A DNA stretch of 63,761 nucleotides, filler included, from Octopus bimaculoides (taxonomy: Eukaryota), in the NCBI RefSeq assembly GCF_001194135.2. It is 4 parts of 4 records of this genome, joined end to end, with 100 filler letters (N's around TTAATTAATTAA, not from the genome) between each part and the next. Parts side by side here need not be neighbours in the genome. Positions count along the whole stretch, not along the records: positions 27,487 to 45,899 come from NC_068982.1; 3 more parts are not named here. One strand, given 5' to 3'. Of the stretch, positions 28,816-30,984 are shown one piece after another. Position 1 is the stretch's first letter. Each line of letters opens with the position of its first letter. Position numbers and translations under genes: made by a program. Under the pieces are notes generated by a model, which was not told the origin of the DNA, ran no database searches, and was given only the letters and a program-made list of their open reading frames with translations.

Positions 28816-29008
28816 ATGTGGTGATCTTAGTAATTTATTTTCAATGAAAAACAGGTAACAAACTTAATGGATCCTACGACTCGAAACAGTAATGTCCATG
28901 GATTTTTGATGATGACAATGGAGTTTATACAGTTCTATATTTAAGAGATGAGGAATTATTAACATTATTTACATTTGACGGATATTTGTCCTCATCTTGT
29001 TTGTTGTT

Positions 29009-29054
29009 AACACAACGTTTCGGCTGATATACCCTCCAGCCTTCGTCAGGTGTC
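29009..29054 (-). ncRNA. Minimal type I hammerhead ribozyme (PLE-type), copy 1
   Basis: GACAC-CUGACGA-A-GGCUG...CAGCC-GAAA-CG-UU-GUGUU: conserved core, 5-bp stems I and II, palindromic ACGU stem III. Confidence 0.75.
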
Positions 29055-29139
29055 TTGGGGAAATTTCGAACCTGGGTTCTCATTCCTAACGATGTTACTA
29101 TTATTATATTATTATTATTATTATTATTATTACTATTAT

Positions 29140-29218
29140 TAATCAGGTCGCTGCCGTGAATCGAACTCGGAACCTTGGGGTTAGTAGCCCGCGCTCTTAA
29201 CCACTACGCCATATGCCC
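29140..29218 (-). promoter_or_regulatory. tRNA-derived Pol III internal promoter head (A box TGGCGTAGTGG, B box GAGTTCGATTC)
   Basis: gggcatatggcgtagtggttaagagcgcgggctactaaccccaaggttccgagttcgattcacggcagcgacc; resembles a tRNA-Asn scaffold but has an imperfect anticodon stem. Confidence 0.8.
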
Positions 29219-29365
29219 GTAGTGGTTAAGAGCGCGGGCTACTAACCCCAAGGTTCCGAGTTCGATTCACGGCAGCGACCTGATTAATAATAGTAATAAT
29301 AATAATAATAATATAATGATAGTTATATCGTTAGGAATGAGAACCCAGGTTCGAAATTTCCCCAA

Positions 29366-29411
29366 GACACCTGACGAAGGCTGGAGGGTATATCAGCCGA
29401 AACGTTGTGTT
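29366..29411 (+). ncRNA. Minimal type I hammerhead ribozyme (PLE-type), copy 2
   Basis: Stem I 29366-29370/29407-29411, CTGACGA 29371-29377, stem II 29379-29383/29394-29398, GAAA 29399-29402; predicted cleavage after 29406 (GUU). Confidence 0.75.
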
Positions 29412-30984
29412 AACAACAAACAAGATGAGGACAAATATCCGTCAAATGTAAATAATGTAAATAATGTTAAATGGAGTTTATGTTTACTAATTACTTGGAT
29501 AATTTAGTCGGCTGAAGTGTTTCAACATACTATATAACGTATAAGATCCTTCTACGTTTACATCAATACCTTGTTCAACATTTTATCATTAGTTTCTATT
29601 ACCAATAATACAGAAGACAGAATCAGTAGAACATCGCACACACAAAGTATGAATTCCCCTGAATTCATATCTTGTGTGTGTCTACTTTTCTCTCATGAAA
29701 TAAATATCAGTTCAGTTATGAAGTCAATTTAATCTATTACACCAAATCTAATCTTACATTCACTGTATTACACCCAACGGATGATTGCATGCAAAAGTAA
29801 CATATCAATACTTGTGAGACAGTGAAGCTTAAAGCAAAATGTGAACTCCAATTAAACCAAAATTTCGATATGGTTTCATATCCCAGTTGTGGCTATTGGC
29901 TGCTACAATATAATGTTTTACGCTTACTCAAATAAAGTACGTTATTTTTAAGATTTAGTACTCTTGACACATTAGTAGATCTTAACACATTACTTCAAAC
30001 TGAACTAGTGTCGTATTTACTCGTCATGTTTAGGGCTCTATACCAGTAAAAGGTTGATTGTATGTCGAAATAACAAATCGATATATTTATATCATAATGA
30101 AGAAAGCTGTTTATTAATTAGTTGGGAGTGTATAACATTTAGAAAGACAAAATAGTTATTAAAATTTACACTGTCAAGAAAATTCTTAAAATTTCTAATT
30201 TTTATTTATACATACATACATACATACATACATATACATATATATATATATATATANNNNNNNNNNNNNNNNNNNNNNNNNNNNNNNNNNNNNNNNNNNN
30301 NNNNNNNNNNNNNNNNNNNNNNNNNNNNNNNNNNNNNNNNNNNNCTATCCAATATACTTCTGAGAGGATACCCAATTATTATTACACTAGTGTTTTTACC
30401 AAGTGCAATAAATGGGTGCGGCTAAAAGGAAATTTTACCCTAAATTTATATAGCAATAAGAAAATGGAGGGGAATATGTGGTACTCATCAACTTGCAGAC
30501 ACTGTACCATGTCAATTTACCTGTTTATTTTTCAACCAAGAGGGCAATAAAAACAATATACAAACACATATGACACACTATGTCATATCAGCAATTAAAA
30601 ATTAAAAATTCAAAAGGACATCTAGTGACCGAAGAAGGGACAAGGTCTTACAGCTGTTTCGGCCTAGAGGTGACATGCCTCATTCTATCTATATAACTCT
30701 AGTAAGCTGGAGTTATATAGATAACTGGAGTTATATAGATTCCACAAGAGACAATCACAAAGCTCATCAGTTCAAAGTCAAAAAGAGTTTCTGAATTAAA
30801 AACTGCAAAGGGAAGGGCAATTAAATACTAAAGTATGTAGCCCTACCTATCGATTGCATTTCAATTGTTCGCTTTGCGTATTAAATAAAAGATTTTGAAA
30901 ATTAAAGGTGTCTATTTACTTCCTGCATGTCTGTATGTATATAGTTGGAATTTACAAAAGAACAAACGACGACGACAGGGAAAC

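Follow-up and report, generated by a model that had tools for sequence, protein, structure and literature searches.

A window of 63,761 nucleotides from the genome of Octopus bimaculoides (assembly GCF_001194135.2), consisting of four parts from four records joined end to end with 100 filler letters between neighbours, was the starting point of this analysis, and all results given for "the piece" refer to its 18.4-kb part from NC_068982.1 (positions 27,487-45,899 of the window). Repeat search and alignment locate at 28929-29469 of the window a 541-bp head-to-head inverted pair built from one unit of ~290 nt. The unit is a young copy of a tRNA-derived retroposon that resembles a short interspersed nuclear element (SINE), has a stem-loop end without poly(A), and carries in its body a minimal hammerhead motif of the type known from Penelope-like elements (PLEs). 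The locus represents one integration event, in which a full copy and an inverted copy, meeting with an overlap of 0-1 nt, were placed together under one 12-bp target-site duplication (TSD). The features of the insertion, with positions in the window, are the following:

28917-28928, no strand: left TSD copy, AATGGAGTTTAT, an exact direct repeat immediately next to the minus arm's outer end
28929-29218, minus strand: complete 290-nt SINE-like unit with head, (TAA)n zone and body, from BLAST and global alignment; its 5' end is the palindrome centre and its 3' end is 28929
29146-29218, minus strand: degenerate tRNA-like head, unit positions 1-73, with 59% G+C and containing the A and B boxes
29201-29211, minus strand: A box TGGCGTAGTGG, unit positions 8-18, an exact match to TRGCNNAGTGG
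29158-29166, minus strand: B box GTTCGATTC, unit positions 53-61, an exact match to GWTCRANNC
29094-29145, minus strand: internal (TAA)n microsatellite zone, unit positions 74-125, from repeat search and arm alignment
29009-29054, minus strand: PLE-type minimal hammerhead motif, unit positions 165-210, from a descriptor scan; predicted cut between 29014 and 29013
28946-28997, minus strand: 3' stem-loop with a perfect 9-bp stem, AGAUGAGGA/UCCUCAUCU, unit positions 222-230 and 265-273, from the minimum free energy fold of the whole unit
28929-28945, minus strand: 17-nt 3' tail CTTAAATATAGAACTGT, without poly(A) and without a terminal simple repeat
29219-29469, plus strand: inverted second copy, unit positions 12 to ~263, from BLAST and global alignment
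29366-29411, plus strand: second copy of the minimal hammerhead motif, from the descriptor scan; predicted cut after 29406
29470-29481, no strand: right TSD copy, AATGGAGTTTAT, an exact direct repeat

Two copies of a SINE-like unit under one target-site duplication

The repeat search resolves the palindrome into two sets of inverted arms, namely 28955-29135 with 29285-29465 (181 nt, 97%) and 29099-29208 with 29218-29327 (110 nt, 95%), the latter separated by a 9-nt centre; the palindromic hexamer CATATG lies in the centre of the palindrome. An exact 12-nt direct repeat, AATGGAGTTTAT, adjoins both outer ends of the pair, at 28917-28928 and 29470-29481. No separate TSD belongs to either arm, and the sequence on both sides of the pair is unique and not palindromic; the whole 541 bp thus arrived as one insertion. 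The insertion is flanked by TGATGATGAC and GTTTACTAAT, so that the empty site would read TGATGATGAC-AATGGAGTTTAT-GTTTACTAAT; the flanking open reading frames (ORFs), used as queries for an orthologous or empty site, returned no match. A separate and much smaller inverted repeat, CACACACAAAGTATGAATTC/GAATTCATATCTTGTGTGTG (20 nt, 90% complementary, with a 4-nt spacer), occupies 29637-29680, ~160 bp downstream of the insertion.

The two arms are nearly, although not entirely, the same. The plus arm begins at unit position 12, or at 11 when base 29218, common to both arms, is included, directly abutting unit position 1 of the minus arm, and thus lacks 10-11 nt at its 5' end, including part of the A box, as well as ~27 nt at its 3' end, near the extremity of which a 9-nt duplication, GTAAATAAT, is found at 29448-29465. 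Global alignment shows 100% identity between the arms over 62 and 131 nt. Apart from differences at the extreme 3' end, the arms differ only within the 52-nt (TAA)n zone, by a 6-nt indel and three substitutions; that all three substitutions should fall within 52 of the 245 aligned nucleotides has a probability of about 0.01 under uniformity, and this clustering suggests that the arms were copied from two different RNAs or that the repeat was copied with errors. The original prediction of a 541-bp insertion that arrived in one retrotransposition event under a single 12-bp TSD is borne out by the repeat search and the arm alignment. Its complete minus-strand unit ending at 28929 stands as well, with the body reduced from ~200 to ~165 nt, and so does the truncation of the inverted copy, for which 10-11 nt and ~27 nt replace the earlier figures of ~9 nt (5') and ~30 nt (3').

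The head of the unit was predicted to be tRNA-like, with the A and B boxes of an RNA polymerase III (Pol III) promoter, and both boxes indeed match their consensus exactly. The composite of the two occurs once in the piece, and its strict form is absent from 4 Mb of composition-matched random sequence. ARAGORN finds no tRNA here at default settings, and with the threshold lowered (-ps90) it returns a degenerate cloverleaf with the anticodon ACT; the Rfam tRNA model scores the head weakly (14.3 bits, E = 6.3). A head that looks like a degenerate rather than a fresh tRNA points to an evolved SINE family and not to a one-off template switch onto a cellular tRNA. The plus arm has lost the first part of its A box, which leaves the minus arm as the one that could apparently be transcribed. 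Downstream of the (TAA)n zone, unit positions 126-290 form an AT-rich body of ~165 nt, which includes a second B-box-like sequence, GGTTCGAAATT; both strands of the 9-bp 3' stem are present in the minus arm only. Short (290 nt, against the limit of 500 nt used for SINEs), non-coding and, as a pair, flanked by the 12-bp TSD, the unit has the general properties of a SINE. Despite an A+T content of 62%, a stop-free frame runs through nearly the whole unit in each arm (28928-29203, minus strand, 92 codons; 29223-29504, plus strand, 94 codons), and this frame has no match in Pfam.

A minimal hammerhead of the Penelope type

Read by hand, the motif is GACAC/CUGACGA/A/GGCUGG-(8-nt loop)-UCAGCC/GAA/ACGU/U^GUGUU. 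The conserved core C3-U4-G5-A6-N7-G8-A9...G12-A13-A14-A15.1...U16.1-H17 is present in both arms (CUGACGA...GAAA-CG-U-U), with an extra unpaired A between A9 and G10.1. Helix I (GACAC/GUGUU) has 5 bp including one G-U pair, and helix II (GGCUGG/UCAGCC) has 6 bp, again with one G-U pair, is closed by G10.1-C11.1 and carries the 8-nt loop. Helix III and loop 3 are absent, their place being taken by the self-complementary ACGU (A15.1-C-G-U16.1). Our descriptor matches the piece twice, exactly in the two arms, and has no match in 40 Mb of first-order Markov sequence of the composition of the piece, even when relaxed to at least 2 bp in helix I and at least 3 bp in helix II; a chance origin of the motif is thereby ruled out. 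The two copies lie ~320 bp apart on opposite strands.

The minimal hammerhead ribozymes (min-HHRs) found in the pseudo-LTRs of metazoan PLEs are distinguished by the absence of helix III and loop 3, by a palindromic 15.2-16.2 segment with which helix III can form only between two copies, by a nucleotide that separates position 9 from position 10.1, by a conserved G10.1-C11.1 pair, by a helix I of 4-5 bp and by a longer helix II (PMC4209133). Dual min-HHRs on opposite strands, 100-700 bp apart, have also been reported (PMC4209133). Judged by its sequence, the octopus motif carries every testable published hallmark: CUGANGA, GAAA and U17, the extra 9/10.1 nucleotide, G10.1-C11.1, ACGU instead of helix III, a 5-bp helix I and a 6-bp helix II, and an opposite-strand pair at a distance of a few hundred base pairs. 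Three of these, namely the 9/10.1 nucleotide, G10.1-C11.1 and the palindromic 15.2-16.2 segment, lay outside the search descriptor of Cervera & de la Pena (PMC4209133). The motif differs from the PLE min-HHRs described there in its setting, which is a 290-nt unit with a tRNA-like Pol III head upstream of the motif rather than a recognisable or bare truncated PLE. The original prediction had named a CUGACGA...GAAA hammerhead, cut after 29406 (GUU), and had pointed to the minimal type I hammerheads with a palindromic stem III of PLEs; the sequence hallmarks agree with that type, and our own numbering arrives at the same site (U17 = 29406), with a mirror site at 29014 on the minus strand.

Whether such a motif would cleave is another matter, and self-cleavage of either copy appears doubtful in the folding model. 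The predicted inactive monomer pairs GACG of the core with CGUU, and a hairpin GUUGU-GUUA-ACAAC (-4.8 kcal/mol) competes for the 3' strand of helix I. With nearest-neighbour energies, the active double hammerhead is placed at -24.3 kcal/mol, two inactive monomers at -30.8 kcal/mol and the best dimer at -34.8 kcal/mol. A disfavoured active fold agrees with the low in vitro activity of PLE min-HHRs, which is low even for dimers (PMC4209133). Since both inserted copies span the cut site, the template RNAs were uncleaved and the hammerhead was not used in this event. Cleavage would, moreover, be expected to hinder the spread of the element, because the reverse transcriptase (RT) must start in the 3' stem-loop and tail, which a cut would detach from the Pol III head. 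Nor would the head-to-head pair give rise to a sense dimer, as a read-through transcript consists of one sense and one antisense copy. Such a transcript is predicted to form a hairpin at -447 kcal/mol, and the suggested double-stranded RNA and ADAR substrate would be a trivial consequence of the palindrome.

The candidate mobiliser and a proposed route of insertion

Three features, namely a 3' module with a PLE-specific hammerhead, an inverted join in the style of PLEs and the lack of an A-tail, make the Penelope RT with its GIY-YIG endonuclease the best candidate for the mobilising machinery. Within one insertion, the octopus pair has a 5'-truncated copy that is inverted and lies directly against the main copy's 5' end. 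This arrangement is recurrent in PLE insertions (Craig et al. 2021, PMC8557442), with which the pair also shares outer ends that differ by a few tens of base pairs. In Octopus vulgaris, 30 Penelope families have been active recently, with 329 recent insertions on record, and curated octopus Penelope families are available in the library behind PMC13282606. The animal non-LTR retrozymes have already been argued to be non-autonomous PLE derivatives (PMC7229834). We consider it an evenly balanced proposition that the 3' body derives from the pseudo-long terminal repeat (pLTR) of a PLE and that the element was copied in trans by a PLE RT and GIY-YIG endonuclease, which would make it a SINE whose tail comes from a PLE and not, as usual, from a LINE (long interspersed nuclear element). 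The wider proposal is more tentative and falls somewhat short of an even chance: that the unit stands for an unrecognised class of SINEs, in which a Pol III head is fused to a hammerhead-bearing PLE terminal module, the whole being moved by PLE RT/GIY-YIG with PLE-style inverted joins at a 290-nt scale and with a hammerhead that works only as a dimer.

A number of results weigh against a Penelope origin. Neither Pfam searches of ten stop-free segments nor motif regular expressions detected a PLE RT or GIY-YIG remnant (including a GIY-YIG core) in the piece; the earlier remark that PLE RT and endonuclease remnants occur in the same window was not upheld for these 18.4 kb and concerns the other pieces. 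The PLE insertions for which the inverted copy was described are of autonomous elements of 3-4 kb with pLTRs (PMC8557442), whereas here the 290-nt unit is non-coding and the repeat search found no direct (tandem) repeat of it at the locus, that is, no partial copy resembling a pLTR. BLAST revealed no further copy of the unit within the piece, and a concatenated multi-frame protein query yielded no further relative among 5.8 billion protein clusters beyond the one described below. In that relative, the implied hammerhead has C11.1 changed to U, C15.2 to A and G1.3 to A, so that the motif is not kept in every copy; the changes weaken the motif without compensation and are read from a protein of a single relative, as would be expected of a decaying genomic copy. 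The Rfam hammerhead models gave no match at E <= 1 in the whole piece or at E <= 10 in 600 nt, a result to be expected for a motif that lacks the helix III hairpin. The only Rfam matches fell on TA/TG microsatellites and on the centre of the palindrome, and were rejected as spurious and microRNA-like. Finally, the energy model places the active dimer fold 6.5 kcal/mol above two inactive monomers.

The strongest competing account, a serious rival although less likely than not, is that of an ordinary LINE-dependent tRNA-SINE, in which a PLE pLTR fragment with its hammerhead is a passive relic and both ends of the break were primed on separate SINE RNAs. It also draws on observations that tell against a Penelope partner: SINEs that depend on a stringent LINE typically end in a 3' stem-loop and a short tail; many LINE families are active in octopus, among them RTE, CR1 and Dong-R4; and the sole RT-like motif recovered from the piece by regular expressions is a LINE-like motif A, which reads FYDLVKAFDSV (33655, minus strand). 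The 12-bp TSD and the junction microhomology suit any target-primed reverse transcription. Against it stand the complete inverted duplicates under one TSD, which L1-type twin priming does not give, since it uses one RNA and yields adjoining, essentially non-overlapping segments. The octopus pair resembles L1 and Alu twin priming in its single TSD, internal inversion, junction microhomology and priming from both strands of the break, but contains the same ~240 nt in both arms, so that twin priming of the L1 type does not fit; inverted duplicates of this kind have been described for PLEs. A partner RT, moreover, would be expected to recognise a region that includes the hammerhead, which lies just ~80 nt from the 3' end. 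As a separate observation, decayed RT-like stretches were noted by eye at 33361-33744 (minus strand) and 37444-37878 (plus strand), with the sequences FYDLVKAFDSVPR, GVKQRDGLPTLFLLYMNDL and IFQGDSLS; they have a LINE-type rather than a Penelope-type look and no Pfam match at E <= 0.1.

The remaining explanations dispense with a single retrotransposition event. Two steps at the DNA level, whereby a SINE was made palindromic by fold-back repair or template switching or a second SINE was inserted at the 5' junction of the first, are very improbable: the palindromic hexamer at the centre and the concentration of arm differences in a slippage-prone microsatellite could be accommodated, but flanking DNA would then enter the arm, whereas the second arm ends near the 3' end of the element itself and abuts the second TSD copy, there is no arm-specific TSD, and the arms are identical over 193 nt. 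We regard it as highly unlikely that the palindrome is an assembly artefact, whether from a chimeric read that folded back or from an inverted repeat joined wrongly. The bounding of the palindrome by unique, non-palindromic flanks and an exact TSD speaks against it, and arm indels, substitutions and unequal outer ends are not expected from a fold-back read; the argument that the TSD and the small arm differences count against a fold-back had been made in advance, and both were found by repeat search and arm alignment. Such an origin would be favoured by the quality of the piece, which is not finished and contains five N gaps, the nearest at 27999-28008 and 30257-30344. A foldback or MITE-type (miniature inverted-repeat) DNA transposon with terminal inverted repeats of ~250 bp is hardly credible, for although long inverted arms, a short spacer and flanking direct repeats would suit it, the outermost termini differ, with ~27 extra nucleotides in one arm, a 12-bp TSD is unusual for cut-and-paste superfamilies, and the arms are each a complete SINE-like unit of the Pol III kind whose 3' end faces outward.

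For the PLE-tailed SINE, a likely route of insertion can be outlined, since both junctions look as if target-primed reverse transcription had started at each end of a staggered break. The plus strand runs from ...GTTTAT straight into the complement of the complete 3' end of the unit, and its 3'-OH, at a nick after this sequence, would prime a full-length cDNA on one SINE RNA; a possible microhomology of ~4 nt (AUAA) backs priming at this left junction. The 3' end of the family may in fact extend as ...ACTRTATAA, as hinted by the O. bimaculoides relative, and could then share up to 4 nt with the target as microhomology. On the other strand, the 3'-OH (...CCATT) would prime ~27 nt inside a second SINE RNA, at an AAU microhomology. 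A single slippage at the initiation of this right end could account for the 9-nt duplication, and copying would have ended 10-11 nt before the 5' end of the RNA. The two cDNAs would then have been joined at their 5'-proximal ends, with an overlap of 0-1 nt and without filler. The hammerhead was most likely inherited with the PLE-derived module and may serve as a structure recognised by the RT, or be a weak ribozyme for which a dimer is needed.

Relatives, comparable elements and surroundings

SINEs are classed by the LINE whose tail they have borrowed, and we know of no class in repeat classifications for SINEs that borrow the tail of a Penelope element. A PLE-tailed tRNA-SINE is likewise not described in the literature that we searched, a search that was not exhaustive. 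Each part of the octopus element is already known, PLE min-HHRs, Pol III SINEs with hammerheads, non-autonomous PLE derivatives and PLE inverted joins all having been described; what is unusual is their combination, in which a tRNA-like Pol III head is found together with a minimal PLE hammerhead in a cephalopod element inserted as an inverted pair.

The translated body (a 52-aa ORF), compared with 5.8 billion protein clusters, has one match, the 51-aa Octopus bimaculoides sequence A0A0L8FV75 (87% identity). Judging from the sequence, this "protein" is evidently a translated copy of the same element family. It ends in ...SSSLKYRTI, which indicates that the ~27 nt found only in the minus arm belong to the 3' end of the family and not to the flank. 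Exact DNA patterns of the unit were absent from metagenome contigs (two scans), viral contigs and prokaryote genomes, and its sequence strings were found neither in the searched literature nor in the supplement of the O. vulgaris repeat paper. The unit is unlikely to be one of the classical octopus SINEs OR1 and OR2, as these are filed under CORE-SINEs in the literature and the body of the unit, inspected by eye, has no such core. A different tRNA-derived SINE lies at 28649-28815 (plus strand), ~100 bp upstream, and its body, gtgttcttgagtaaaacactttatttcat...ctgagctgtaaatgag, looks CORE-SINE-like by eye.

Two groups of small hammerhead-bearing elements invite comparison. The Schistosoma elements Sm-alpha and Sj-alpha (Ferbeyre 1998 and Laha 2000, as reported in PMC6765202) are, like the octopus unit, short non-coding Pol III retroposons with a type I hammerhead. 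According to the same account, their hammerheads are canonical and efficient, they are usually arranged in tandem, and cleavage frees monomers from multimers; by description, the octopus unit differs in its motif without helix III, in its solo or inverted copy, and in that a cut would separate the promoter from the 3' end. The animal non-LTR retrozymes (PMC7229834; Li, Clavereau & Pollet 2026) are also small, non-autonomous, AT-rich and hammerhead-bearing, have TSDs of more than 4 bp and are argued to be mobilised by PLEs. They consist, however, of tandem 150-450-bp units with canonical type I hammerheads and form circular RNAs (PMC7229834; Li, Clavereau & Pollet 2026), whereas the octopus unit has no tandem copy and no release of unit-length RNA, and possesses its own Pol III promoter. 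Membership in the retrozymes was accordingly rejected, as the arrangement is inverted, tandem units are lacking and the hammerhead is minimal rather than canonical.

SINEs account for ~12% of the octopus genome and, like Penelope elements, have recently been active there, which makes the proposed SINE-Penelope partnership directly testable. The integration of PLEs and the origin of their inverted and tandem joins are still undefined, and an in vitro system has been called for (PMC8557442); for PLE integration, a non-coding substrate of 290 nt would offer a compact model if it reproduced the inverted join with one TSD around it. Should the proposed partnership be real, the numerous "solo" minimal hammerheads of animal genomes would not all be truncated PLEs, and some may be Pol III-driven parasites of PLEs. 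A dimer-only hammerhead could then cut only when two SINE RNAs pair, and would thus act as a density-dependent brake, or it could act as a recognition fold for the RT.

The surroundings of the insertion are rich in gaps and repeats. With its TA/TG microsatellites and further tRNA-SINEs, the remainder of the piece has the appearance of octopus sequence. Five runs of N, of 10-466 nt, interrupt the piece (27999-28008, 30257-30344, 34774-34815, 38794-39259 and 44313-44412), and TA/TG/CT microsatellites adjoin at least three of them; the gapped state of the assembly bears on the trust to be placed in its repeats. TA/TG-rich blocks at 37141-37283, 40040-40930, 41465-41650 and 43541-43703 give sub-threshold Rfam matches to microRNAs (mir-297, mir-3149, mir-466 and others), which were rejected as low-complexity artefacts, their scores being far under the gathering scores. 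The ORF fragments ...YETLTAEKYC... and RPTLVSQKKPILLHDDT at 41968-42575 (minus strand) look by eye like a decayed mariner/Tc1 transposase, an assignment that Pfam does not confirm. The region 35550-36030 resembles what we take to be a common octopus tRNA-SINE and is not palindromic. Another interspersed repeat is represented by diverged copies, 72-84% by self-BLAST, at 34858-35049, 39352-39547, 44413-44674 and 35183-35252, none of which is a palindrome.

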